Assembly (NCBI RefSeq): GCF_021869535.1
Contig: NW_026262604.1
Location: forward strand, 34,038,001-34,102,000
Reading direction: 5' to 3'
Length of the DNA: 64,000 bases
DNA from: Mytilus californianus
Lineage: Eukaryota
The notes below the pieces were generated by a model that was not told the origin of the DNA, searched no databases, and saw nothing but the letters and a program-made list of their open reading frames with translations. Of this stretch, positions 33,321-55,995 are shown piece after piece. Within the stretch, counting starts at the first letter, position 1, and each line of letters starts with the position of its first letter. The position numbers were made by a program, and so were the translations under genes.

Positions 33321-34090
33321 TTTTTAAGTACCAGTACGTTTATGTATCCAAAAAATGCCACTGAAAGATATTTGATAGAAGTTGTTTTCTTTATATGATT
33401 TTACAATGACTGCTTGAAATCCAGTTGGAAATGTTTATCCATATTTAGGATCAGAAAAATGAGTGAGGTGAATATTTCTTGCTTTGTACTAAAACGACAT
33501 CCCGAGTAAGTTAGTTATATTGCTATACATATAGTTCCCTACGTATTAAAATATTCCCTTAAGCTTGAATAGAAATGGTTGAACCAATTACACACCCAAA
33601 TTATTATGAACATGTGCCAGTAAAAAAGAAATTTGTGACCACCAATTTTTCATAGGCTTTGGTTGCTTAAGATGTTTAATGATTGGTCATCATAGATTTG
33701 ACAGTTCTTACGTTTACCGATTAGATAATGTTTAGTGCATTGCTTTTTTTCAATTTAAATGTCCAGCAGCTACAGGCAGTTAATAAGGTAAAGAATCGTG
33801 CTGGAAAGTATGATTAAAGCATGACATACTCCTAGTATTTTGTGTTTTAGATTTAAAAATTAGTAGGCAATTAGAAGAGAAACATAGTAATGAATAAAAT
33901 CATTGCGCGTCTTCCAAAAACCTCAAAAACAAACAATCTACAGAGCAAAGAAAAACAAACTCTAGAAACTTTGCGCAATAAAGAGGATTTCGTGCGCAAA
34001 TTAGAAGTGAATATAAACTTGAGGCAAGGTAAACCATCATCTCAACAATTAAAAGATGATGGTTTACCTTGCCTCAACAGATGATATCGG

Positions 34091-34244
34091 CGTGGCACTC
34101 TCTTTACACGAGGCATCGGATTTAACGTCCCCATTCTGACCGGACGTGGCTGCAAATGTGTACATCCCACATAGCCAAACGGACGCCCCGGTCGGAGGAA
34201 GACCAATGGTGACCATACTTCTATTCCCCAGTCACCCTTGGGGG
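34091..34244 (-). mobile_element. SINE 5'-half fragment with a small internal deletion
   Basis: Family head sequence only, no tail. Confidence 0.85.
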
Positions 34245-34371
34245 CTGAAACAGGTGAACTGAGGGTTTTCTCAGTATTAGCAACAGTTCGGAATATTGTC
34301 TTCTCAGACATGTTTGAAGTTTCATTGTCATTCTTAGACTGCATAATCTCTTATGTTACTGTTTTGCTGGG

Positions 34372-34860
34372 AAGTACATCAAAAACGGTTTGGATGCATT
34401 TTTGTAACAACAGGAAATTGCATCTTGATTCAGAACTCACCTTATACGGAAACCCAATTAAAATGGATGATGAAACCAAATTTCTTGGGTCAGTTTTTGA
34501 TAAAAAGTTAACCTTCTTACCCCATATCAAAATTTTAAAGTAAAGATGTTTAAAAGCATTAGATATTTTTAAAACTTGTCGGCAGCACTGACTGGAGTGC
34601 TGATCGCAACATTTTACTTAATTTATATAGATCTCTAGTTAGATCTAAACTATATTATGGCTCAATAGTGTATGGCTATGAACGGAAGTCCTACGTACAG
34701 ATTCTCGATGCTGTTCATCACCAGAGTTTGCGTCTCTGTCTTGGCGTCTTTAAAACCTCACCAGTTGAGAGTATGTATGTAGAGGCTGATGAGCCCTCAC
34801 TCTCCATCAGACGTTTGAAGCTTAGACTTCAATACGCTGTCAAGCTAAAAGCATATTCAT
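34372..34860 (+). mobile_element. Internal fragment of the same Nimb-type LINE family
   Basis: SKTVWMHFCNNRKLHLDSELTLYGNPIKM...KLKAYS closely parallels the 10.9-14.3 kb ORF, with stops. Confidence 0.9.
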
Positions 34861-34869
34861 ATACACATA

Positions 34870-36440
34870 TATAAAGTAGAAAATCGTCTACTGATTCCGA
34901 AGTTTCTGACATTGAGGATAAAATGTCCAGTAATCACTCTTCATCTGTCACTTCCGACATGGAAGATAACATGTCTGTTAATAGGATTAAAATAAAAAAT
35001 AATCGGAAACCAATTGATAAGGGACTAATGAAATAAAACTAGTAACAAAAGAACATGCACAAAATTTAGTAAGGGCTTTGATAGGTATTATGTAGGTATT
35101 AATTGGCTTTGTAGGTAGGATTCAAATCAGTTAAAATTAATAAAATTATTAAATGTGTGTTAATTTATTACTCATTTTCATATTACAGAATGGCAAGCAT
35201 TGACGAAAATGAAGAAAACCAAGATGTGCTATCGGTTAGCTTGTGGGAAATGTTGCATTTCTTTAGTGTGGCGCAAAATACTACCGTATTGTGAGGCTAA
35301 CTATTTCCGAGAGCATCGCATGGAAAAGTCAAAACAGTTCGTAACAATAAATGAAGAATTTCATGCCATCCAGAATTGAGTAAATCAGTCAAAAACAGTC
35401 ATAATTGACCACTTTTGTGGGTTGCCCATCAAGTTTGAACAAATCATCAAAAGATTGATTGATTGTTGGTTGCTTAACGTCCAGTGGCAAATATTTCATG
35501 CATATTCAGGACGAGAACAAATTAACAATAAATACAATAGATAGGTTCTGTAATAGGGCTTCCGGAATTGAGGTCGGAGAAATTTAGACTGCCACGGGAA
35601 ATGAGGGTATATAGGATAGGGACAGAAATTTAGCCTTGCAACAGGTCACCTACGGACCCCTCAACGAGTTGTTGCAAGGGTTCTTAACGTGCAATGAGCG
35701 TGGCACTCTCTTTAAACGAGGCATCGGATTTAACGTCCCCATTCTGACCGGACGTGGCTGCAAATTTGTACATCCCGCACAGCCAAACGGACGCCCCACT
35801 TTAGCAAGGGTTTTACTGCCGGTCGGAGGAAGACCAATGGTGACCATACTTCTATTCCCCAGTCACCCTTGGGGGGAAATCATCAAAAGAAGGACACGTT
35901 TTGCAGAAAGTCACGATATGCCATGTCTACAACATCCCAGAAAGTGGGCAGTAGGATATTTCAAAGCTATTGGAAGGTAACGACAATACAATTGCTTTGG
36001 CAGTTATTACCAAAATATCGTCTCTTGGATGCAGCCAGACGCATGGATAGGTTACGAAATTTTTAACTTTTAAGAGAATTTGGAGTGACAAAGTGCCACC
36101 GGAAAACATTTGACCCTCGTTTGAACTTTTAAATTAATAAAGACAACGAAAAACTATACTATTATAAGCTATATTTGTATCCTTAATTGTAGGAAGAATC
36201 TGTGATGAAGTGGTTGTGGTTATAACTTTTCTTTTTGGCTTAACCAGCCAATTCATTGTCAAAGAGAATGTCATGTTTCAGAAAATTAAAGAAATTTCAA
36301 CAACCAGGTCAAATTGGCTCATTACTTTTGTCATAGACGTGGATCCTTTTGACTCGTTTCTAAATAAAATAGAACTAGACTTAAACAAGGCTTTTGCCGC
36401 TACACAAAATGTTCACACCATTTCAATGTTCTATACCCCT
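34870..36440 (+). mobile_element. Second env-bearing Gypsy remnant (integrase tail, accessory ORF, env N-terminus)
   Basis: ENVMFQKIKEISTTRSNWLITFVIDVDPFDSF (36210-36440) matches ENVVFDKINSITTTRSNWLVTFVTDLKPFDNF; same layout with acceptors. Confidence 0.75.
35455..35876 (-). mobile_element. SINE, full length
   Basis: TSD AAATCATCAAAAGA at 35441-35454 and 35877-35890. Confidence 0.93.
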
Positions 36441-39119: not shown

Positions 39120-39560
39120 AAGAATTATATTACTTATTGATTTAGATGAGTAATGAACCGTAGTATCATCTGCATATATAAGTCATACATGTACATGGAA
39201 TCTTTTAAAGTAAAAAGGTAAATCATTTATATATACAAAGGGAATAAATAAGTACCAATAATACTTTCTTACAAGTGGTATTCCAAAATTACAGGATTTG
39301 GTAGATTCCATGCTATTTATTACAACTATTTGAGATCTTTCAAGTAAATAGGATGTAAAACCTTTAAGTAATAAAGAATCAAGCTTATAAGAGTTTAGTT
39401 TAGTTATTAACATATAATGATTAACCATATCAAATGCCTTTTTTAAATCTAGAAATGTATTCCAGTAAAGTTTCCATTATCCATTTCTTAATATATCTCA
39501 TTAACAATTTTAGTAAGAGCTGTTACATCTAAAACCAGACTGATTTATATGTATTAACTG
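39120..39560 (-). mobile_element. Old CR1/L2-like RT remnant
   Basis: LITKLNSY...FTSYLLERSQIVVIN...GIP...YINDLP. Confidence 0.7.
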
Positions 39561-40213: not shown

Positions 40214-43200
40214 ATGGATGATGATACTCCATGGATTCTTCCATGCCTACATGGAACCTTAGTTGATGAGGGTAAAACATTTGTAACAGGATATGTGGAA
40301 TCCAAAGAAGATCTTGACATGGTTATTGAGGCTCACAAGAGAGCCTCCTTGAGCACTTTTGTGTCTTGGTAATATTTATATAACATTAAAAATAAAACTT
40401 TCAAAAACCATATGTATTCTATAGATTTAACATAATTCAATATACACTGATGTCAAGGTGTCTAACATGATGGAAACACCATCACATTGTGACATTCATT
40501 ACCAGTAGAACCGAAAATTGCTAATTTTATTATATAATTTATCCTTGTTTTCTTGTTCTTTTTGTGATAAATAAATACACTATTGAAAAATCAACTGAAT
40601 TCCTTCTTCAACTTATATAGAAATTATTTTCTGTTTCAATGTAAAATTTAGACTTTACCAAAATTTTACATTTTCTTAATCTTGTTTATGATGCATCCCG
40701 ATCACAATGTGATGATTAAAACACTTAAGTGTTCTTTATTTTTAAAAATTGATGTCATTTCATTGAAAAACAAAACAGCCATTCAAAAAGTTTATCACAT
40801 GAATATTAGGAATTTAAATCCTTGTTTATCTGTGTAATCAAAGAAATTTATTTCAATGGTGAATTAATGCAACAAAAAAATGCCACCTATGACTTATTTT
40901 CCCAAATACATGCAATTGCCATTTTGAAAGCCTTTAATCTTACAAACTATGCAGTTTTGTTGTCATGCTGTTAAATAATTCATACTTTTTAAAATCTAGG
41001 TCAGATGACATCAAAAAGAAAGAGAAAGCAGGCAGTAGAAGACTTCTTTGGAAGTACCAGGATATCCAGAGCAATACCCCTTTTGTGGTTGAAAGGAGCA
41101 TTGTCCTTTTGTGCCAGTATGGTCACCCACGGTCTCCTGGAGAAGAGGTTATTAAGTCTGGACATATATTTATAGATTTATCATTAAGCATTTTCACACC
41201 CTGTCAGGCTAGTGGGTGCATATAGTGACGTAGATGACCAATCCTTCCATTTAAGGCTTTAAGGCCATCTATTGTTCACCACTTGCCCAAACAATGGGCT
41301 GAAATTCTATGACACTATCTGAGAATATTTTGTTACATAGTTTAAATATGAATCTGACTAACCACAGCTGTTTCTCCTAACATGAATATCTGTTAAGAAT
41401 TTTCTCTCAAATCAATTCCATTTTTAAATCATTTATAATAAATTTTAACAGTGAGAGGTATAATCTTAAATAACAAAAAGGGTTTTGTGAACAATGCTAA
41501 ATTAATTTTGTGTTTTCCTATATTTTTGTCACATTACTCAGATTGCTTACCATGCTTCATTGTCTTGAGAATAAAATATTTTTTTGTATTTAACTTTTTC
41601 TAATTTCCCCCAATTTACATTGGATTGACCTCAACTCAATTATGTTGTAGACTGAAGTTCAGGAAGGTGACCACAACTATAAGAGGAAACGGTTTAACAT
41701 ACAAAGTAGCAAAAAAGTTGGATGTACTGCCCAACTCTCAATTAAATATATTACAAGGTAAGAAATTTTATGTGTATATATATATATATATACATAAGTA
41801 TATGACATCAGATTCCTGTATATCACAGGAATCTGATGTCATATACTTATGTCTACCAAAATAAAACACAGATACATCAGATTCCATCATATATCACATG
41901 AATCTGATGTCATATACTTATATCTACCAATATAAAACACCAATACACCAGATTCGATCATATATCACAGGAATCTGATGTCATATACTTATATCTACCT
42001 ATATAAAACACCAATACATCAGATTCCACCATACATCACAGGAATCTGATGTCATATACTTATATCTACCTATATAAAACACCAATACATCAGATTCCAC
42101 CATATATCACAGGAATCTGATGTCATATACTTATATCTACCTATATAAAACACCAATACATCAGATTCCATTATATACCACTGGCATCTGATGTCATAAA
42201 CTTATATCTACCAATATAAAACACAAATACACAAGATTCCATTATATATCACAGGAATCTGATGTTATATACTTATATCTACCAATATAAAACACAAATA
42301 CACAAGATTCCATTATATATCACAGGAATCTGATGTTATATACTTATATCTACCTATATAAAACACCAATACATCAGATTCCATTATATACCACTGACAT
42401 CTGATGTCATAAACTTATATCTACCAATATAAAACACAAATACACAAGATTCCATTATATATCACAGGAATCTGATGTTATATACTTATATCTACCAATA
42501 TAAAACACAAATACACAAGATTCCATTATATATCACAGGAATCTGATGTTATATACTTATATCTATCAGTATATAACATAAATACATCAGATTCCATTAT
42601 ATTTCACAGGAATCTGATGTCATATACTTATATCTATCAGTATATAACATTAATACATCAGATTCCATTATATATCACAGGAATCTGATGTTATATACTT
42701 ATATCTACCAATATAAAACACAAATACACAAGATTCCATTATATATCACAGGAATCTGATGTTATATACTTATATCTACCTATATAAAACACCAATACAT
42801 CAGGTTCCATTATATACCACTGGCATCTGATGTCATAAACTTATATCTACCAATACAAAACACAAATACACAAGATTCCATTATATATCACAGGAATCTG
42901 ATGTTATATACTTATATCTACCAATATAAAACACAAATACACAAGATTCCATTATATATCACAGGAATCTGATGTTATATACTAATATCTACCAATATGA
43001 AACACAAATACACAAGATTCCATTATATATCACAGGAATCTGATGTTATATACTTATATCTATCAGTATATAACATTAATACATCAGATTCCATTATATT
43101 TCACAGGAATCTGATGTCATATACTTATATCTATCAGTATATAACATTAATACATCAGATTCCACCATACATCACAGGAATCTGATGTCATATACTTATA

Positions 43201-46200
43201 TCTACCTATATAAAACACCAATACATCAGATTCCACCATATATCACAGGAATCTGATGTCATATACTTATATCTACCTATATAAAAAACCAATACATCAG
43301 AATCCACCATATATCACAGGAATCTGATGTTATATACGTATATCTACCAATATAAAACACAGATACACCAGATTCCATCATATATCACAGGAATCTGATA
43401 TAATATACTTATATCTACCTATATAAAACACCAATACATCAGATTCCACCATATATCATAGGAATCTGATGTTATATACTTATATCTACCAATATAAAAC
43501 ACAGATACATCAGATTCCATCATATATCACAGGAATCTGATTTAATATACTTATATCTACCTATATAAAACACCAATACATCAGATTCCACCATATATCA
43601 CAGGAATCTGATGTTTTATACTTATATCTACCAATATAAAACACCAATACATCCGATTCCACCATATATCACAGGAATCTGATGTCATATACTTATATCT
43701 ATCAATATATAACACCATTACATCAGATTCCATCATATATCACAGGAATCTGATGTCATATACTTATATCTATCAGTATATAACATTAATACATTAGATT
43801 CCATCATATATCACAGGAATCTGATGTCATATACTTATATCTATCAGTATATAACATTAATACATCAGATTCCATTACATTTCACAGGAATCTGATGTTA
43901 TATACTTATATCTACCAATATAAAACATTAATACATCAGATTCCATGATATACCACTGGCATCTGATGTCATATACTTTTATCTACCAATATAAAACATT
44001 AATACACCAGATTCCATTAATAATCACTGGCATCTGATGTCATATACTTATATCTACCAATATATAACACCATTACACCAGATTCTATCATATATCACAG
44101 GAATCTGATGTCATATACTTATATCTATCAATATATAACACCATAACATCAGATTCCATCATATATCACAGGAATCTGATGTCATATACTTATATCTATC
44201 AGTATATAACATTAATACATCAGATTCCATTATATTTCACAGGAATCTGATGTCATATACTTATATCTATCAGTATATAACATTAATACATCAGATTCCA
44301 TTATATTTCACAGGAATCTGATGTCATATACTTATATCTATCAGTATATAACATTAATACATCAGATTCCACCATACATCACAAGAATCTGATGTCATAT
44401 ACTTATATCTACCTATATAAAACACCAATACATCAGATTCCACCATATATCACAGGAATCTGATGTCATATACTTATATCTACCTATATAAAAAACCAAT
44501 ACATCAGATTCCACCATATATCACAGGAATCTGATGTTATATACTTATATCTACCAATATAAAACACAGATACACCAGATTCCATCATATATCACAGGAA
44601 TCTGATTTAATATACTTATATCTACCTATATAAAACACCAATACATCAGATTCCACCATATATCACAGGAATCTGATGTTATATACTTATATCTACCAAT
44701 ATAAAACACAGATACACCAGATTCCATCATATATCACAGGAATCTGATTTAATATACTTATATCTACCTATATAAAACACCAATACATCAGATTCCACCA
44801 TATATCACAGGAATCTGATGTTATATACTTATATCTACCAATATAAAACACAGATACATCAGATTCCATCATATATCACAGGAATCTGATTTAATATACT
44901 TATATCTACCTATATAAAATACCAATACATCAGATTCCACCATATATCACAGAAATCTGATGTTATATACTTATATCTACCAATATAAAACACCAATACA
45001 TCAGATTCCACCATATATCACAGGAATCTGATGTCATATACTTATATCTATCAATATATAACACAATTACATCAGATTCCATCATATATCACAGGAATCT
45101 GATGTCATATACTTATATCTATCAGTATATAACATTAATACATTAGATTCCATCATATATCACAGGAATCTGATGTCATATACTTATATCTATCAGTATA
45201 TAACATTAATACATCAGATTCCATTACATTTCACAGGAATCTGATGTTATATACTTATATCTACCAATATAAAACATTAATACATCAGATTCCATGATAT
45301 ACCACTGGCATCTGATGTCATATACTTTTATCTACCAATATAAAACATTAATACACCAGATTCCATTATAAATCACTGGCATCTGATGTCATATACTTAT
45401 ATTTACCAATATATAACACCATTACACCAGATTCCATTATATATCACAGGAATCTGATGTCATATACTTATATCTATCAATATATAACACCATTACATCA
45501 GATTCCATCATATATCACAGGAATCTGATGTCATATACTTATATCTATCAGTATATAACATTAATACATTAGATTCCATCATATATCACAGGAATCTGAT
45601 GTTATATACTTATATCTATCAGTATATAACATTAATACATCAGATTCCATTATATTTCACAGGAATCTGATGTCATATACTTATATCTATCAGTATATAA
45701 CATTAATACATCAGATTCCATTATATTTCACAGGAATCTTATGTTATATACTTATATCTATCAGTATATAACATTAATACATCAGATTCCATTATATTTC
45801 ACTGGAATCTGAAGTCATATACTTATTACTGATTATATTGTGGCTACCTGAAGAAATTAATATCATAAAAAAGCTGCATTATTAATTATGATATATATTT
45901 CTTCAGGTATCCACAGTATTCAGTAGAGAATTCTGGTCGACATAGAAAAAAGACACAGTTAAACCTGTTAACCGATCATTTAAGAACCCAGAATTCGGCA
46001 TCAGAAACCAGAATTTTTGTAAAGTTACCGCTTAAATCAGCCCATAATAATCACAATATAACTGTTGAAAGTGGATTTGGAAATACAATGCATCCTGAAT
46101 TGAAATCAATTATTAAACAAAATGTTGAAATGGGCCTCACATCAGTCCCATATCTGAGACGTGTTCTACAGCAGCATGTGAAGGGCAACTTATGTTCACC

Positions 46201-49200
46201 AGGGATGGTTGACCCAGCTGAAACCGACAGATCATATTATCCAACCAGTAGGGATATTTATAATTTTATACATCAATACCTGGCAGCTGGATCTTTCTCA
46301 GGCTTTGACCAAGAAAATTTACAACATAAAATTAATGAATGGAGGTCAGCAACATCTGACAAATTTTTCTTTAGGCAATGTTGTGGTGATCAGCCAACCC
46401 CTAAATCTAAAATAAATGTCCAGAAAGTTTTTCTGCCTGATTCAGAGGATGAAGAAGATGAAGAGGACACTATGGATTGCTCAGAAGAAGCCAGCAATGA
46501 GAAAAATACTTTTCTCTTTGTACACCAAACAGAAAATCAAATGAAAATTCTTCAAAAATATGGGAAATTTATACTTATAGATGCTACTTACAAAACTAGC
46601 AAGTATGCACTACCATTGTTTTTAGTTGTCGTCAGAACCAATGTTAATTATGTACCTGTTGGACAATTCATTGTTGAAAGTGAGAATGCAGACAACATAT
46701 CAGAGGCCATAAGAGTTCTAAAACAATGGAATAAGGAATGGCAGCCTGAAGCTTTCATGATGGACTACTCAGATATTGAGTACCAAGCAGTTCATCAGGA
46801 ATTCCCATTGTCAAAGAAATATCTTTGCATTTTTCACATAGAACAGGCATGGCTTCGTTGGACAAAGAAAAGTAAGTAGAGATTCCTGTGATATATGGTT
46901 GAATCTGATGTATTGGTGTTTTATATTGGTAGATATAAGTATATGACATCAGATTCCTGTGATATATGATGGAATCTGATGTATTAATGTTTTATATTGG
47001 TAGATATAAGTATATAACATCAGATTCCTGTGATATATATTGGAATCTGATGTATTGTTGATTTATATTGGTAGATATAAGTATATGACATCAGATTCCT
47101 GTGATATATGGTGGAATCTGATGTATTAATGTTTTATATTGGTAGATATAAGTATATGACATCAGATGCCAGTGGTATATAATGGAATCTGATGTATTGG
47201 TGTTTTATATTGGTACACTGTATATATAAGTATATAACATCAGATGCCAGTGATTTATGATGGAATATGGTGTATTAATGTTTTATATTGGTAGATATAA
47301 GTATATAACATCAGATTCCTGTGATATATGATGAAATTTGATGTATTGGTGTTTTATATTGGTAGATATAAGTATATGACATCAGATTCCAAGGATATAT
47401 GATGGAATCTGGTGTATTAATGTTATATGCTGATAGATATAAGGATATGATATTTTTTATGTCTCCCCCACTTAGTCTGGGAGACATATAAATTTGTTTT
47501 TGGCTTTAAAATACCATAATTTTATGTTGGTTACCAGGATTTTTGTTGGATATTTGTATGCCCTTTGAACTTATAGAAGAACAAGACATGGGTAGACTTA
47601 AGCTTGTGTAGACAAAAACAAACTGTAAATTTGATATTATTTTACTTACAGGAAAATCCAATCTCACAGATGATGAGACATCACAGTTTCTGCTCTTAAT
47701 GAGGGAAATTCTGAGGGCCCCAACTGTACCAGCTTATGAAGATGCTGTGTCAAATTTAAGAAAATCGGAGGTGTATGCCAAAGAGAATGTGAGGACATAC
47801 CTAGATAGGTATTGGCTAAGTATTCCAGAGGTAATGATATTTTAATTATATTTTAGTAGTAAGATTAAGTGGCTGGTGTGATTAGTGCTTTATATACTAT
47901 ACAATGTATTACCATAAAAAGAATGCTATCATATGCCATGTTTAATAAAAAAAATACAAGTACAACCAAATTTCAAATCATTGAAGATTCAGGACATACA
48001 GACTGTGCAGGGGTAATGGTATGGACCAGTGGATTTAGATATCGGCTCCACTGGTCTGTACTAGAAATCTAGGGCACTTCTGATATCCTTAAGTTAGTTG
48101 TCTGACATTCTCAGTAACTATTTATATGTTCATTGTGTTAATTGTGTGTCACTTAAGAAATAATTGCATTTAAAATTTTATTTGCATCATTTATCATCGT
48201 GCCTCTATTGATTTCCTTGAAAATACAAAGTAACATCAGTCAAATTACACAGTTTTTTACTGCTGAGTGAGTGCTGGCATCTGTATAAAGAAATATAGTT
48301 GGCAATGTATAGTTAAAATATATATTAACCAAACAAAAATTTTGGTTAATATATATGTTTAAGAAAACAAAACACTAGCCAAACTATTATGAGTGAAAAT
48401 GTTTCATAAATAGCCTTTTGAAATTGCCTGACCTATATTGTACGTATTACATTTTTGAAGACACAATGGGTAAATAAATAATGTAACACTGTGACTGTCT
48501 TAGTGTTTCAAAATATAAACATGATTTTTTTCAAACAGGGAAAACATTGATTGCAACAATTTACGTGAATGTATATTTTATACAATATATTTTGTAATAC
48601 ATTTTTTTCTATTATTCCTTTTTGCAGAGATGGTGTAGGACATTCATTGATTCTGGTTTTAATTCAATGTTGAGAACTAACAATGGAGTGGAATCCCTTA
48701 ATAGTTCGCTGAAGAATTTCTACACTAAACTAACAGGAACAGGGACAATTACAAATCTAATTGACATAATTGTCAATGATTTCGTGCCTGATCTGATTAA
48801 GTCATTCCGCAGACTTAATTACTGTTGTAGTAGTCAATACAGGCAGTATAACACACACGTACCAGAATACCTTCGTAATCTTCCAAGAAATGTAGTCAAA
48901 CATTGTTTGATCAGGTATGCATCAGCTACTGGCTACTCTAGCGATGATATTGACGAAATTTCCATTGGTGTTCTTTTAGTAGAGTGAAAATGAACCCGAA
49001 CGTCATTATGCAGTCGACTTTGGTTCAGATGATAGATTACCATCATGTTCATGTGATGACTTCCAAAAGTACTTTTTGCCATGCAAACATTATTTTGCTG
49101 TGCTGCGTAACACCCAATATTGTTGGAATGACTTAAGCTCTAGTTATATTCAAAGCCCATATCTACAACTTGATACAGAATTTCTGTCATCAGGAGCATT

Positions 49201-52200
49201 AGAGGTGTCTACTGAAAATATAGATCAAAGTGAAATGTTGGAATTGCTAGAAGTTCAACCTGATTATTCTGGAAGTGATCTACCTCATTACTCTGACACC
49301 ACATTACTTAGTAAGGCTAGAGGAAAGTTTCGTCAGAATTTAAAAGTAATGGATGACCTGAGTTTTCTCTCACAAAGCTCAGATGTGCTAAATAATGCAA
49401 ACAATGTTTTGGAAGAACTAATAACCAAATTAAAATCCACGGTTGAAAAAAGTGACAGTCTTCCTCTCCACAATGGTAAATCATCAACATTAACCTCTAC
49501 TGTTCGACCATTACCACAAAGAAAGAAAAAGAAAGTAGCAAGGAAGAAAAATGTCACAGCTACCATACTTTCTGTGAAAGGTAAGTTTGATGTTCTTACC
49601 CATAATCATAATGTAAATCAAGTTATAAGAGGGAAAAATATGATTCTGTGACATAATCACTTAAATAATAAGTCAACATTGATAGAGAATTTATAATGTT
49701 TTTATGTCTCTAAATATTCATGCTGATAAGCATATGATAATTGTAATAACAAAATTACCTCACAGTAATCTGATTCAAAATTAAAATTCCTAGTCCAAAT
49801 AAAATGATCAAATAGATCATCAATTACGAGGTTGATACATGGATACTGCAATGGTCCTGACTCATGGTACAGTCATTTCAAACAAAATATCATAAAGGGC
49901 ATATAATCATTAAGAGTTTCATACGTAATGAAGAAAAGTTGGCAGCTTTGTCATTTTTTTTTCAGAGAAAAACTACCTGGGTGTACAAGAAACTACAGAG
50001 AACACTCCAGCAGGTAATTAATAATAATAAGGCCACCTCCCCATATACAGTCCTATAGTGACAAATTCCACTTTTATATATATAGTTTTTACCTTTTGGA
50101 GTAGTCTCAGTGATGGAATTTGTCATGATTATTTTAAGGTGTGGCCTTACCATTATCCAGGTAATAATATCTACATCACAGGTAAATATCTTAGTCAAGA
50201 GATGGACCCTCTGTAATGGTAGTCTTCACATTTTTTTATCTAGTCTAAAAATACATTGTTTCAGCGATTTAAAAAAAGACACTGCATGTAGATCAATGAC
50301 CATTAATTACATGTAATAAATGATTATAAGGGTTAGAATATAAATTTAAGGATAAACCGGAGCTGGTTTTGAATTTGATCTTCAATCTGATTGCAATTTC
50401 TTCATTGTTTTTGTCCTAACTTATGATGTATTTCAACATGAATAATATATTGTCACCTTCGGAAGTACTCAATCACCACCTGTGAAACCAAAATTGGTAA
50501 AAATGAGATATATATATATTTATAAAAGTAACTATATGTTTTTTATCTCTGTACTAATTATCCTGAACATTTTATATAAATAATATATATATATGTTTAA
50601 TATTTATTTTTTCAGTATTCGTCAGGTTGCATTGGTAATGTAACACATCGCTTTGGGTACTCAGTCATATTTGCATATAGTAGTTTTCTAGCTCTTTTAT
50701 CTCTGTACTAATTATCATGCACATTTTCCATTCATAATCCTTATATTCCTCTTATTCTTTGTAGTTAATTATGTACAGTAAATGAATACAATTATAGCTT
50801 ATAGTTTACAATTATCACTTAATATTAATACACACTCTAATATTCTATTTTCATAATGTAGTTTTATGTTATGAATTGTATTTAATGTGATAATAATAAT
50901 AACATACTCATTTTTACTTTTATCATGATAATCGTGTGATGTATAATTATTTTTATGAACGTATGATCATACCATGTGTTAAATAAACTTTTATAATGAA
51001 TACCTATCTGCCTCATACAATGTAATGTTCTTGGTACCAATGAATAATATGTACAGCTAAATTCTGACAATATCATTAAATATCAATTAGAGTTAATGCT
51101 TGGTTTAAATTTTATTTATCTTTGACAACATATGTAGGGATGCATGATTTGCATCCAATTAAACATTCTATGTTGATGTTTTTGTGAATTAACCACTTGT
51201 ATTCGTTGGGGCCATTTCAAACATATTTTTCTATGTCAAAGAAGGACTTTTCACATATTGAAAATCATATATAGTGTCACTTTCCAATGAAATTTCTTGT
51301 CATATCTATTTTTGATGTGCTTTTATATTTGTTACATTTACTTATATCGTTACGTTCTAATGTATAACCCCCCAAGGGTGACTGGGGAATAGAAGTATGG
51401 TCACCATTGGTCTTCCTCCGACCGGCAGTAAAACCCGTGCTGAAGTGGGGCGTCCGTTTGGCTGTGCGGGATGTACAAATTTGCAGTCACGTCCGGTCAG
51501 AATGGGGACGTTAAATCCGATGCCTCTTGTAAAGAGAGTGCCACGCTCTTTGCACGTTAAGAACCCTTGCAACAACTCTTTGAGGGGTCCGTAGGTGACC
51601 TGTTGCAAGGCTAAATTTCTGTCCCTATCCAATATACCCTCATTTCCCGTGGCAGTCTAAATTTCTCCGACCTTAATCCCTTAATCTATTACAGAACCTA
51701 CCTATTGTATTTATTGTGAACTTGTTCTCGTCCTGAATATGCATGAAATATTTGCCACTGGACGTTAAGCAACCAACAATCAATCAATCTAATGTATAAT
51801 GTATAAATCATCTACATTGCATGTTATTTGTATTATTTCAGGAGACGATCAGCTTAACCCTGATAGTATAATAGAGACTAAGAAGACTAAGAAAAGAAAG
51901 TTAAGAAATCAGCCTTCAGGTATTAACTATTTTATATAAGTGCTTGTAACCTATAGCTATTGAGAAGTGTAGATGTAACAATGTTGTAAGGAAAAAACGC
52001 CTTTGTTTGTAATGTAATAGTAGACTGTGGTAATGATGAGGATGAACATCATTTCTTCTCAATGTGTCCACTATATGCATCACAGAGACAGAGACAGAGT
52101 TTCATTGAAAACCTTAAAAAATACCCTAATCCAGTTCCCCTGTCGAATTTTTCACTTTGTACCACTGTCACAGTTTCATACAAATTTTTGTATATCACAT

Positions 52201-55200
52201 CATTATTGTGTGTTTTCCTTTATATGTTTTGTTTATTGATTGCCATATATGTGTTTGAGCAAATAAAAATTGTCTATTGTCTGTATAGCAAAGGATAAAA
52301 AGGTATATAATTTGAAATTCTTTACATATAATTTTGTATAAGGTAACTAGGTAAGATTAATTTAATGACTCTTTGTATTATACATACACTGTGTACTTAA
52401 AGAAACAATTAAGCTTTTAAATGCTGATATTGACCTATGGCGAGATTAATTAATGACTGCTTGAAAATATATATTATGTTCTGGTATGTTCATTAGCTTA
52501 TAGGGGAGTTAACCATGATTAGGCTTGAACAAATTTCCTTTAGAAGGTCCCTCCTAGAAATAAAGTATTGATTGTTTTTATTGAACAGTTACATATTATC
52601 ACACTACACATACTTTTTTAAACTGATACATATTTAAAAAAAGAAAAGGAATAAGAAAAGGAAAATATATGATAGAATCTGATGATGCACTACAAATGTT
52701 ATCAGTATTGAGGTGCAATGCATTGATCATTAAGAACTTGGAACAAAAATTCTGTTTTGTATCAATATATTTTGTGATTCATATTATACACCATATTTAT
52801 GTTTATAAAACATATGTACTTTTGGTCATACATTTTCACAGGGTAAGGACAAGTTGATTTTGTAACTACATTATGTTTTACTTTATACATGTACCCCTGC
52901 ACATGAAGTAAGGGTTTTTTTTGTCTGCTCAAATGTACATTGACCACAACTCCTCTTAATAACTTAATTTCCTTGAAACTTTGTATATTATTAGATAACC
53001 ATGTGGGGGTATTTCACATGTAAACACTCATGATGTTAAAGTGGTATTACACAATGTAACTGATGTAATAAAATGAAGTGAAAGCTTAAAAGATGTGAAC
53101 AATCCATTTTTTTTTCAGGGAATTGCAATAAGTGTAAGAACACATCATCCCGCAGTCAGGAGTTTTTTGAATTTGGTGTTTCAATAACAGAGGCAAGTTA
53201 TTTACTAATTAAGAACTTAACAAATATAATACAAAATTACTTTGATGTGACCCATCAGAATTATCTAGTTTATATCACTATGCATTCATTTATTGCAATG
53301 GAATATTGATTATTAGTGGTTTACTTTCAGCACCAAACTATAAGTCATGCACTGGCAGGATTCTTTAAGGATGAGCAGGTTGAGAAAAAATGTAGTGGGT
53401 AAGTTTTCAATTTGTTTCTGCATAAGAATCTTGTCTTTTTACTGTATACACCTTGATATAGACACCTGACATCAGATTCCTGTTTTCTAGCAAGGAATAT
53501 CATGTCTTTTTACTGTATATACCTTGATATAGACACCTGACATCAGATTCCTGTTTTCTTGCAAGGAATGTCATGTCTTTTTACTGTATATACCTTGATA
53601 TATACACCTGACATCAGATTCCTGTTTTATAGCAAGGAATGTCATGTCTTTTTACTGTAAACACCTTGATATAGACACATGACATCAGATTCCTGTTTTC
53701 TTGCAAGGAATATCATGTCCTTTTACTGTATATACCTTGATATAGACACCTGACATCAGATTCCTGTTTTCTTGCAAGGAATGTCATGTCTTTTTACTGT
53801 AAACACCTTGATATAGACACCTGACATCAGATTCCTGTTTCTTGCAAGGAATATCATGTCTTTTTACTGTATACATTTTGATATAGACACCTGACATCAG
53901 ATTCCTGTTTTATAGCAAGGAATGTCATGTCTTTTTACTGTATACACTTTGATATAGGCACCTGACATCAAATTTAATATATTCTGTGGTGTTCATACAA
54001 TCTTTTTTGTCATATCTTTATTTTCTATTATTGTCAATATTCTACATTTGATAGTATGTGGTTTATTTAAATGGTGTTTGTTTGTATTATAAAAATCATG
54101 TGTGCATTTTACTAAGTCTTATATTTTAACATTATTTTTGTTTATCTGTTGCCAGAAAAATACATCAGCAACAGTGTCAAAAAGTATGCTGAATGTGCCA
54201 AAGAATATCATTATTCAGTTACAAAGGTAGTTTTATTATTCTAATAGTTACAATTGAATTAAAAATTGTTGACAAACTAGTCTAATTTCACAACATTTTT
54301 GCACCTGCACCAAGTCAGAAATTCTAGTCTGACTGTGTCTTGATACATCTTGGATCATATTTAGTTCTTTTATTTGTGTATAAACTGATACAACATGTTT
54401 CTAAGTCATGTAAGGGGTAAAATGGGTTTCTTTTAGTTGTCAATATGTACCATTAGCTTTGATGATCTGTAATAATAATAGATTTAAAACAATGTATAAG
54501 AAAAAAAATAGATTATATTATTTTTTCGACAGAAAAATTTTGTCAATTAAAAATATAAATGTGTTTTTATGTATCCTTCATACTTGCCAAATACCTTTCC
54601 TAAAATTAGTAACTCAAGTTTTCATAATACAACAATTTAAGTACAGTCATTCTGTTGAGCATATTTACATCTATTTAAAATCATGCTATCATTTGGTTAT
54701 ACTTTGTCCTTACAGGTCCACAAGTACACAGAGAAAAGTGCTAAAGCAGATAGAACTCCATTTCAGGATTGATTTAAAAAAGATTATGTTGAGGACAATA
54801 ATGTATGTACTTTCATTAAAATAATGATATTGCACTGATTTCAAAAATGTCATTAACAGAAACACTTTTTTCAACAAAGGTCTCTGTACGTATCATTAAG
54901 TTCATAAAATCCTGGAAACAAGCTCTTTTGTGACTCTAATAAAGATAATCATGGTATTAAACTAAGAATGTATCACAAAGTTAAAAATAATTTCGAATTA
55001 GAGAAATACCTCATGCTGGACATTAACAAAAGTGTTATATCTTAAATGGTAAAAATTTTAATTTTTAATAGCCAAAAACTAATAGAAGTTGGTAGATATA
55101 TACTAGAACACCTTTAGAACAGAGAATTTGTCAACTTTCAAAGGATAGGATCCAGCAGAAGCTCAGCTAGGCCACGTCCGACTATGTAAGACAGGGTTAC

Positions 55201-55995
55201 TTTGGAATACTGAATAATAAATGTTTCTGATCATTTTGTAGGGTCAAGAAGTCAAGGCTGACCTTTTTGCAGTGATAGTCCACAAAGGGGGAACTTTAAA
55301 AAGTGGGCATTATTATGCATATATACAGTTTGGAGGACACTGGTATTGTGTAGATGACATGAGGGTTTGTATAACAATTAAAAACTTAAGACTTACAGGA
55401 ACAGACACAAAATATGTTTACTAATTAGTATACCTCCAGCATACCTTGTAATTGCATCTCCTCCTAAACGTCTGGATGGATATTGATAAATTTTGCACAG
55501 TTGTAGTGCATGACATGAGTATCTGCAAGAAGCAAGATAAACCAGGTCCTCTTTGTAAAAGAGGAGATAATCTAATTTATTTAGTTTAATTTTGAAATTC
55601 AAGTTAATATTCTTGTAAGCGCAAATCCTCCTAAACTATTCAATGGACAAAACAACCAAGGCCACCCTAAGGTCTTCAATGAATGGCAGGGAGTAACCAT
55701 ACCTGGGGACAGACTAACAGTTGGCCCCCTATAAATCATTAGTAATTGTACAATAAAATCAGCTAGCTCCTTGATATTAAATGAATGGATTGATATACAG
55801 TTTGATATGAAGTTTTAAGTTTGGTATTACACATATATTCTTTAATAGCCACATGTTTGATCATTGGATTATCAGCTTTGTAATATGCCTTATTGCTTAA
55901 ATTTGATTGTTTTCTTTCAGATTGAAGAGGTTTCTTTATCATCCGTTAAAGCAATGGATGGCCAGAGCTATTTGCTTTTTTATAGAAGGAACTAA
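40214..55995 (+). CDS. MULE (Mutator-like) transposase with SWIM finger, spliced to a C-terminal USP-like half-domain; about 1047 aa after repairing 3 lesions
   Basis: Phase-consistent exons: 40214-40368, 41000-41147, 41651-41757, 45907-46871, 47652-47830, 48628-49580, 49966-50013, 51842-51919, 53119-53192, 53331-53398, 54146-54226, 54716-54802, 55242-55364, 55921-55995. Motifs: SKKVGC...H (DNA-binding domain), IDATYK, MMDYS, CIFH, TNNGVES, CSC...PCKH (SWIM), CNKC/CSGC, VIVHKGG..SGHYYAY..WYCVDD, YLLFYRR. Confidence 0.82.
41826..45826 (+). repeat. 71-bp tandem satellite, about 56 units, in intron 3
   Basis: Unit CACAGGAATCTGATGTCATATACTTATATCTACCTATATAAAACACCAATACATCAGATTCCACCATATAT; period confirmed (41966 to 42037). 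Confidence 0.97.
46880..47452 (-). repeat. Same 71-bp satellite in inverted orientation, about 8 units, in intron 4
   Basis: Reverse complement of the 41.8-45.8 kb unit, starting 9 bp after the splice donor. Confidence 0.96.
51368..51787 (+). mobile_element. SINE, full length
   Basis: TSD TCTAATGTATAA at 51356-51367 and 51788-51799. Confidence 0.93.
51960..52200 (+). mobile_element. LINE ORF2 C-terminal remnant
   Basis: C...EDEHHFFSMCPLYASQR zinc-knuckle-like pattern. Confidence 0.55.
53432..53970 (-). repeat. Second, diverged 71-bp satellite, about 7.5 units
   Basis: Period 71 (53470 to 53541); aligns without gaps to the main satellite. Confidence 0.93.
55000..55140 (+). mobile_element. 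LINE ORF2 C-terminal remnant
   Basis: LEKYL...IEVGRY...EQRIC pattern. Confidence 0.5.

Follow-up and report, generated by a model that had tools for sequence, protein, structure and literature searches.

Exon layout and the MULE-derived body

The window, by which we mean the whole stretch of 64,000 nucleotides of Mytilus californianus DNA that was analysed, holds 14 exons on its + strand, spread over 16 kb at 40214-55995 and numbered e1 to e15 below, with e6-7 being one exon. The first part (e1-e7, 40214-49580) encodes a protein composed of ALS2CR8, MULE/ZSWIM1-3 RNaseH-like and SWIM regions, while the last part (e10-e15, 53119-55995) encodes the fingers, His box and C-terminus of a ubiquitin-specific protease (USP). 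Profile and homology searches were run on single exons, and phases were checked by arithmetic. In the following list, P0220 is a protein of Mytilus coruscus (CAC5423573.1, 1111 aa) and X1 is the public run that yielded a cDNA contig.

e1, 40214..40368, +, start codon and N-terminus of the MULE-derived protein; 55% identity with P0220 residues 1-51, with an identical exon end
e2, 41000..41147, +, first part of the ALS2CR8-type N-terminal domain; Pfam PF15299, E 2.4e-4; exon homologue in L027
e3, 41651..41757, +, ALS2CR8-type domain continued; 61% identity with P0220 residues 109-141; splice sites read
e4, 45907..46871, +, end of ALS2CR8 and MULE/ZSWIM1-3 RNaseH-like catalytic core; DATY, MDYS..E; PF21056, PF10551; alignment of 10 relatives
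e5, 47652..47830, +, helical spacer of the transposase body; 50% identity with P0220 residues 464-523; splice sites read
e6-7, 48628..49580, +, TNNGVE catalytic-E region, SWIM zinc finger, acidic stretch and K-rich tail; donor 49580/49581; alignment
e8, 49966..50013, +, 16-codon linker exon, phase 1 to 1; canonical AG/GT sites
e9, 51842..51919, +, 26-codon K-rich (NLS-like) linker exon, phase 1 to 1; canonical sites
e10, 53119..53192, +, USP fingers with the first CxxC; GC donor (AG/GCAAGT); cDNA contig X1, record 5
e11, 53331..53398, +, fingers, ending midway through the second CxxC; depth of the cDNA contig and record arithmetic
e12, 54149..54226, +, second half of CSGC and the P-x-x-IIIQLQR strand; reference acceptor TG, not AG
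e13, 54716..54802, +, palm strand ahead of the His box; two extra A in the reference at 54776
e14, 55242..55364, +, USP His box (GHYYAY) and Asp box region (VDD); Pfam UCH, E 8e-7
e15, 55921..55995, +, C-terminal USP strand (YLLFYRR) and stop codon; phase 0

As an acceptor lies immediately upstream of e1, a 5' UTR exon is likely. The introns of the locus are filled with satellite, and an abundant, transcribed repeat ends at ~51789, about 50 nt before e9.

An earlier note on this DNA had described 14 exons joining in matching phases. This holds once two read-supported 2-nt corrections are made, whereas in the reference the frame is broken at 48980 and at 54776. At the first position the reference has a 2-nt deficit in e6-7, and the read-based contigs X2 and X4 carry an additional AA after 48980 that restores the frame. 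At the second it has two extra A that are missing from the cDNA contig (X1) and from X2 and X4, and only without them does the phase of e13 agree with the donor that the cDNA uses. With +AA at 48980 and -2 nt at 54776 the 14 exons add up to 3138 nt with all phases matching, and the predicted product has 1045 aa. A 70-nt intron (48915-48984) that would bridge the first frame break was rejected, as the stretch is coding and conserved in relatives and the +AA of the read-based contigs restores the frame. All four exonic substitutions seen are non-synonymous, which fits relaxed constraint.

The description of the first part as a MULE DDE transposase with a SWIM finger was confirmed. Pfam assigns PF21056 (E 7e-16) and PF10551 (E 6e-15) to the MULE exon (46088-46879), ALS2CR8 matches are present in e2 and e4, and the DDE-type residues (DATY, MDYS..E and TNNGVE) are conserved in an alignment with 10 relatives. 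The SWIM motif CxC...CxH occurs in frame at ~49040-49100, where it lines up with SWIM in the relatives; Pfam SWIM scored in the paralogue P0220, and the window exon alone is below the Pfam threshold.

The USP half and its Mytilus paralogues

The fingers (CNKC/CSGC), the IIIQLQR strand and the terminal YLLFYRR were all found where they had originally been reported. In Pfam, the exon with the His box (55242-55364) matches UCH (E 8e-7, profile positions 203-238); a genome-wide UCH scan covers it at profile positions 197-254, and it matches the structures of USP36, USP46, USP12 and USP18 (E 8e-5 to 3e-3; up to 2e-3 for the first three and 8e-5 for USP36) with GHY and DD aligned. The zinc ribbon of the fingers consists of two CxxC pairs, CNKC in e10 and CSGC across the e11/e12 junction that is used in the cDNA, and its short exons give no Pfam score on their own.

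The absence of a USP Cys box, previously noted for 49.6-53.1 kb, extends to the whole 64 kb. Motif scans of all six frames gave no Cys box, even with patterns loosened to the divergent form of the family itself, and no QQD(A/S)xE box. Likewise, tblastn with the Cys-box exon and N-terminal half of P0220 found no match in the window, the genome-wide Pfam UCH scan gave no further match on the window's contig (C24), and no Ulp1 or PHD remnant was found in the window. The protein predicted from these exons cannot be a cysteine protease, and its fingers-palm remnant might bind ubiquitin at best, a decaying appendage being more likely. Catalytically inactive USPs include USP39, PAN2/USP52 and USP53/54. 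One PDB entry (8c61) bears the title 'Inactive ubiquitin carboxyl-terminal hydrolase 54'. Such proteins resemble the window copy in keeping a USP fold without protease activity, possibly for the binding of ubiquitin or partners. However, they retain the whole thumb-palm-fingers fold and lose catalytic residues only, whereas the entire thumb is absent from the window copy, which makes independent folding of its USP half doubtful.

P0220 and its cluster-mate P0152 (VDI37852.1 of M. galloprovincialis) have the same seven-exon MULE-SWIM body as the window, with 50-69% identity exon by exon and a common donor after SWIM. This donor is conserved at the nucleotide level in the paralogue loci of M. 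galloprovincialis and M. coruscus, where the annotated models splice onward. In the P0220 gene model the MULE body is followed by a linker, a divergent Cys-box-like motif and a QQD motif, with UCH as the only Pfam match in the part after the MULE-SWIM body (E 0.012). P0220 is a paralogue and not the orthologue. It has a linker domain of ~170 aa, a Cys box and a QQD box, none of which is present in the window. A fingers/His-box half was not seen in P0220; its model ends, and the 10 kb downstream contain no C-terminal USP half. Its linker and Cys-box region gave no match as a word-search query, a result that is uninformative because P0220 itself is no cluster representative.

Further genomic copies bear on how the two halves belong together. 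In a paralogue on C132 the QQD exon is followed 1 kb further on by a fingers exon similar to e10 (39% identity), an arrangement that ties both halves to one USP family. A stop-containing fragment of the sister lineage, with 77% identity to P0220 and one TGA, is found at C132:45088197, and L023 holds a paralogous e12 exon together with a decayed paralogous e11 exon. On C126 and C96 the USP half occurs as decayed copies, whose similarity at the DNA level is limited to the His-box exon; these have no MULE in the 13-18 kb upstream and no adjacent USP N-half exons, so the half may also travel or duplicate alone.

The earlier note had left a choice between a pseudo-DUB and an element that lost its Cys-box exon, and had proposed to look for that exon in paralogues. 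The M. coruscus model does carry a Cys box, in divergent form, together with a QQD box, both absent from the window, after the same exons and the same donor, and this favours the second option. Since the front half is present in a related mussel gene, the catalytic part of the window copy seems to be lost, and the N-terminal USP half would have been lost rather than never present.

Relatives and a proposed origin

Ulp1 (Peptidase_C48), with or without PHD, is carried by P0002, P0065, P0053, P0154 (Misgurnus), P0208 (Ciona) and the oyster proteins P0210/P0211. Four of these (P0002, P0065, P0154 and P0208) are the closest relatives outside Mytilus and have it after the same tail. The transposase bodies of the Ulp1 carriers share 35-56% identity with that of the window, a K-rich tail (LPLH...RKKK) follows SWIM in both, and a cysteine protease for a ubiquitin-like modifier occupies the C-terminal position at which the window has its USP half. 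In contrast, the module in the window belongs to clan CA family C19 (USP) and not to C48, lacks a PHD finger and comprises the fingers, palm and His-box half only. Pfam detected no UCH domain in any of ~200 proteins in the databases that are related to the MULE part; exon-by-exon searches covered the 150 best representatives and Pfam scans ten long ones, and word searches with relatives as queries gave none with PF00443.

Mutator-type transposases travel with Ulp1 and OTU proteases, and KI-MULEs are the plant analogue of the Ulp1-bearing MULEs. OTU-bearing MULEs and Helitrons resemble the window in having a deubiquitinase-type protease, which MULEs encode together with a Mutator-type transposase. 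The OTU elements are multi-copy and young with an N-terminal OTU, whereas the window has a single-copy locus with a truncated USP at the C-terminus. Vertebrate ZSWIM1/ZSWIM3 and CARF (ALS2CR8) are domesticated relatives, single-copy and intron-bearing, that have the Pfam domains ZSWIM1-3 RNaseH-like, SWIM and ALS2CR8 in common with the window gene. To our knowledge, they have no protease module. In a table of a MULE survey (PMC6446971), MuDR-6_HM of Hydra is an OTU-bearing MULE, and the survey gives OTU and SET as cargo but not USP. Our literature search found no paper that unites MULE, SWIM and transposase with a ubiquitin-specific protease.

Based on these comparisons, we propose with moderate confidence that the locus is one intron-rich, single-copy Mytilus gene, derived from a MULE, in which a truncated USP module stands in place of Ulp1 and PHD. 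The ancestor of the gene would have been a MULE-type transposase in the family with ALS2CR8, ZSWIM1/3-RNaseH-like and SWIM, whose K-rich tail after SWIM would lead into a 3' effector module, mostly an Ulp1 SUMO protease and a PHD finger in the relatives. In at least two Mytilus lineages this effector module would be a divergent USP deubiquitinase. The window copy would lack both the linker domain and the thumb of the USP with its Cys box and QQD box, with e8 and e9 presumably running directly into the fingers, palm and His-box exons by way of the joins e7-e8-e9-e10. The product would retain a transposase-type DNA-binding and RNaseH-like body and is probably catalytically dead. On our reading, a USP takes the place of Ulp1 in a gene derived from a MULE, which varies an arrangement already known in kind.

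Transcript evidence and competing explanations

Splicing within the USP half is seen in a 478-nt cDNA contig from one public run (X1), which joins e10-e11-e12-e13 and uses both the GC donor and the TG acceptor. The contig carries the junctions 53192/53331, 53398/54149 (forming CSGC) and 54226/54716 as well as the donor at 54802; its piece on e12 begins at 54148 and its piece on e13 ends at 54803. By length arithmetic, the rest of the contig fits e14 and 20 nt of e15. Its first 30 nt are non-intron, upstream-exon sequence, with a 5-nt overhang that fits only the donor of e9; over the 23 kb ahead of e10 there is no other TTCAG/GT donor. The remaining genomic His-box copies have kept their introns or are lone exons, and thus no retrocopy was seen that would mimic the contig.

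Expression of the locus is very low. Among the RNA sources, from 48890 onward, neither reads nor contigs connect e7 with e8 or e8 with e9, and none connects e9 with e10 unambiguously. Run X1, the source of the USP cDNA, shows zero depth at e7, an exon that no RNA source covers, and a 10-million-read sample (6%) of the raw RNA run X5 gave zero reads on the exons from 48890 onward, which is no proof of silence. The earlier note's 'spliced' product therefore stands in part: RNA connects the USP exons with one another and with a single upstream exon fitting e9, and does not demonstrably reach the MULE body. Of the junctions 49580/49966, 50013/51842 and 51919/53119, for which the earlier note had proposed junction reads as a check, none has direct RNA support and only the third is backed by the 5-nt fit; for this step from e9 (51842-51919) into the fingers exon the phases match as well, although the join is not unambiguous. 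The MULE-to-USP link would instead be supported by the matching phases, the conserved donor at 49580 and the M. coruscus paralogue.

Alternatively, the locus could comprise two transcription units, with the MULE gene ending at or just after e7/e8 and the USP exons, of which e9 would be the first or second, forming a separate truncated-USP remnant that is non-coding or gives a short peptide from the Met of e12. We regard this as unlikely, although it accounts for several observations. The zero depth of X1 on e7, together with the zero raw reads, suggests that the USP exons may start internally, for example near the transcribed repeat ending at ~51789, which could supply a promoter. Read-through of the e7 donor leads to a stop after 24 codons (~49649-49651), where several relatives end, and the decayed USP-half copies elsewhere have no adjacent MULE. 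However, the reading frame is uninterrupted across e7-e8-e9-e10 with matching phases, paralogue models that continue to USP exons make use of the conserved e7 donor, and e8 resembles the tails of family members, its x-x-x-[FY]-x-G-V motif being also present in those of P0152 and P0151. There is also no ATG in e8-e11, which would leave a USP-only transcript without a sensible start, and no upstream USP exons (Cys box, QQD box) were found in the 40 kb before the gene.

It is rather improbable that the locus is a dying, dispensable relic without selection, with spliced RNA that is low-level noise and phases that reflect a formerly functional fusion gene. The two frame-breaking indels of the reference haplotype, the exclusively non-synonymous exonic differences, the empty 6% RNA sample and the loss of the catalytic half would all be expected of such a relic, as would the stop in the sister lineage on C132 and the many family copies with stops. 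Nevertheless, the frame is intact in other assemblies (X2 and X4 for the MULE exon; X1, X2 and X4 for e13), the DDE-type residues, the SWIM finger and the His and Asp motifs of the USP are all conserved, and the splice sites, two of them non-canonical, are still functional.

The best other genomic match to the MULE exon has 47% identity, which makes the locus single-copy; at least 76 distant family matches are present in the genome, many of them with stops. No terminal inverted repeats were found between the 10-kb flanks, where two perfect inverted matches of 19-20 nt, unextended on either side, look like chance. The term 'element' is therefore doubtful, and a single-copy, intron-rich locus with no detectable TIRs points to a transposase-derived gene rather than a mobile MULE. 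An autonomous, mobile Mutator-like transposon with a USP fragment as its cargo, comparable to a Pack-MULE or KI-MULE, is thus very improbable, as its intact catalytic motifs, the number of family matches and a protease cargo typical of MULEs are set against that low identity, the missing TIRs and 14 exons over 16 kb with satellite-filled introns.

Returning to a single MULE-derived gene with a truncated USP module, a more far-reaching conjecture, which we consider improbable as it stands, is that a small Mytilus family of domesticated MULE proteins delivers a deubiquitinase and not a SUMO protease to DNA or chromatin, with the window copy as a naturally truncated member that would retain the body targeting DNA and a fingers-palm remnant binding ubiquitin, and would serve as a catalytically dead competitor or ubiquitin reader. 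If Ulp1 and PHD were indeed replaced by a USP at the same position, this would suggest selection for 'some ubiquitin-like-modifier protease', and the replacement would amount to a natural swap experiment. As for the truncated copy in the window, it is a candidate for a natural pseudo-enzyme. For the annotation of this genome, it matters that GC-AG and GT-TG introns are really used and that 2-nt differences in the reference break frames. In M. edulis, the short models P0218 and P0221 cover only e1-e3.

Gene model and reading frame

We read the locus, with modest confidence, as one gene with a truncated USP (ubiquitin-specific protease) tail. A 14-exon model (40214-55995) was reconstructed from sequence on the forward strand of this AT-rich, eukaryotic DNA; Pfam and other searches were run per exon, and phase agreement was established by arithmetic.

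Exons of the gene model, with Pfam matches and splice-site features
40214-40368, +, e1
41000-41147, +, e2; ALS2CR8
41651-41757, +, e3
45907-46871, +, e4; ALS2CR8 at start, ZSWIM1-3 RNaseH-like (E 7e-16), MULE (E 6e-15)
47652-47830, +, e5
48628-49580, +, e6-7
49966-50013, +, e8
51842-51919, +, e9
53119-53192, +, e10; GC donor AG/GCAAGT
53331-53398, +, e11
54149-54226, +, e12; TG acceptor in reference
54716-54802, +, e13; GTATGT donor at 54802
55242-55364, +, e14, His-box exon; UCH (E 8e-7)
55921-55995, +, e15

The MULE and UCH domains named in the earlier note were borne out by Pfam on separate exons, and the CxC...CxH SWIM finger by alignment with relatives, to which the K-rich tail and the catalytic-type motifs DATY, MDYS..E and TNNGVE can also be aligned. 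The reference frame is interrupted at 48980, after a conserved pre-SWIM strand and before the SWIM finger. A 70-nt intron at this break was rejected, as it would remove codons that are homologous in the aligned relatives. Contigs of X2 (DNA-type, from the same species) and X4 (a run labelled as another organism) have an AA insertion behind 48980 that restores the frame. At 54776 in e13, two of six A are absent in X1 (the run that yielded the cDNA contig below), X2 and X4, in X2 in only part of the depth; without them the donor at 54802 is in phase 0 with e14. Each of these 2-nt differences disrupts the frame in the reference only; either the reference is misassembled at these sites or it represents a broken allele. 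With both, the 14 exons amount to 3138 nt (1045 codons and a stop) and all phases agree. Further small indels between the reference and read-based contigs lie at 49953 and 52082, and all four exonic substitutions seen were non-synonymous, too few to conclude from.

Splicing and expression of the USP half

Among the public runs compared with 48890-54889, X1 provided a Logan contig (478 nt, depth 4.5) with aligned pieces at 53114-53190, 54148-54225 and 54715-54803, while its bin depths additionally require 69 nt on e11. The record arithmetic fits e10, e11, e12 and e13, with a further 123 nt belonging to e14 and 20 nt to e15; splicing therefore joins the USP-half exons in the way that the earlier note had modelled. 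The GC donor of e10 (53192/53193) is used in the cDNA, as is the TG acceptor at 54147-54148 of the reference, where the e11/e12 junction creates CSGC. Copies of the His-box exon found across the assembly (1.65 Gb, 175 contigs) were either intron-keeping or lone exons, so that no retrocopy was seen that could mimic the contig, which is most simply cDNA.

Upstream, the predicted junctions fared unevenly. The first 30 nt of the contig do not continue into the intron, and its alignment extends 5 nt (TTCAG) past the e10 acceptor; across 23 kb upstream, only e9 ends in TTCAG/GT, which indirectly supports the e9-e10 join (51919/53119). Nothing in the data examined bridges e7-e8 (49580/49966) or e8-e9 (50013/51842), and the depth of X1 on e7 is zero. 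Two transcription units, one for the MULE part and one for the USP part, would be compatible with these unbridged junctions; we consider such a division rather unlikely. Raw RNA-seq of X5 (10.3 million reads sampled, ~6% of the run; same study as X2 and X3) gave 0 reads on any exon, and expression of the locus is very low.

Relatives and the absent catalytic half

The His-box exon matches solved structures of USP36, USP46, USP12 and USP18, in alignments that pair the GHY and DD residues. The lack of a Cys box reported earlier was confirmed: neither Cys nor QQD box occurs anywhere in the 64 kb, whichever frame is read, with canonical or family-form loosened patterns, and a genome-wide UCH scan gave no match on contig C24, which holds the window, besides the His-box exon. 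The USP remnant of this copy cannot cleave; a fold and ubiquitin binding of the fingers-palm-His-box remnant are putative.

A profile-free exhaustive search returned 2447 relatives; the USP exons had no match among the best 150 of them. In the closest full-length relatives, Ulp1 (Peptidase_C48) stands straight after the same K-rich tail, frequently accompanied by a PHD finger; no Ulp1 or PHD trace was found in the window. A paralogue with a Cys-box-like motif, of the kind the earlier note proposed to look for, came from a 90% cluster listing: P0220 of Mytilus coruscus (CAC5423573.1, 1111 aa) has the same seven body exons, 50-69% identical and with equal ends. The donor after the SWIM exon is nucleotide-conserved at its locus and common to M. 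galloprovincialis. Beyond it, the protein continues with a linker of ~170 aa, then a Cys-box-like motif of divergent form and a QQD motif, a region with no counterpart in the window. The sole Pfam family reported for this stretch is UCH (E 0.012, two stretches), and an 'inactive USP54' structure is matched weakly at the correct position. The M. coruscus model end looks like a read-through donor, and no His box was found in the 10 kb downstream.

In the window's genome, the P0220 lineage appears as a stop-containing fragment only. On contig C132, a QQD exon 47% identical to that of P0220 lies 1 kb upstream of an exon 39% identical to e10; the two halves are therefore of one USP family. On the same strand, ~39-44 kb upstream of these, are MULE and SWIM exons (C132:15474238-15519057, -), and MULE, SWIM and P0220-like linker exons stand in order on one strand at C99:19980242-19993644 (-). 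Decayed USP-half copies comprise L023 (C126:815797-821163), with e11-e14-like exons, three with stops, and L015/L024 and L016 (C96), with a His box only; no MULE was found within 13-18 kb upstream of the C126 and C96 copies. Two further sets of USP-like loci, with identical scores within each set (C110:67597330-67603679, C132:54676023-54682373 and C141:821250-827600; C99:54703415-54707903 and C110:26719304-26723792), have paired long stop-free frames (~700-1650 aa), one matching the front of the UCH profile and one the back, and resemble a multi-copy element that codes for a complete USP.

Origin of the gene and surrounding repeats

Mutator elements bearing Ulp1 or OTU are established. The cargo listed in a MULE survey (PMC6446971) includes OTU and SET but not USP, and our literature search found no paper connecting MULE, SWIM and transposase with a ubiquitin-specific protease. 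A USP on a MULE-derived gene would therefore be a new combination relative to known Ulp1/OTU carriage, with a putative MULE-USP join at a locus that is very weakly expressed and shows signs of decay. The simplest explanation would be that an ALS2CR8-MULE-SWIM transposase-derived gene family bears a 3' modifier-protease module, that in Mytilus a USP replaced Ulp1 and PHD, and that the window copy afterwards lost the linker and thumb (Cys and QQD boxes), leaving an in-frame fingers-palm-His-box remnant still spliced at a low level. A functionless relic would suit the scarce transcripts and interrupted reference frame, less so the restored frame and used splice sites, and appears improbable. A mobile element with cargo is very improbable, given that no terminal inverted repeats were found and that the MULE exon is single-copy (next genome match 47% identical), its distant matches numbering at least 76, many broken.

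A 71-bp satellite occupies the introns flanking e4 as arrays in opposite orientation (41805-45826 and 46880-47450), with arms of 336 nt that are 90-92% complementary; the e11-e12 intron holds a third array, also of 71-bp units (53428-53974). A very abundant repeat at ~51290-51789, also present at 34042-34344 (-) and 35636-35980 (+), has an ORF-like frame of 90-114 aa and ends ~50 nt before e9; in DNA-type runs its contig depths add up to more than one million, and the X5 reads within 48890-54889 are confined to it. Short ORFs at 34238-34543 (+) and 39183-39428 (-) resemble reverse-transcriptase fragments by eye and, if so, would represent retroelement debris upstream of the gene.
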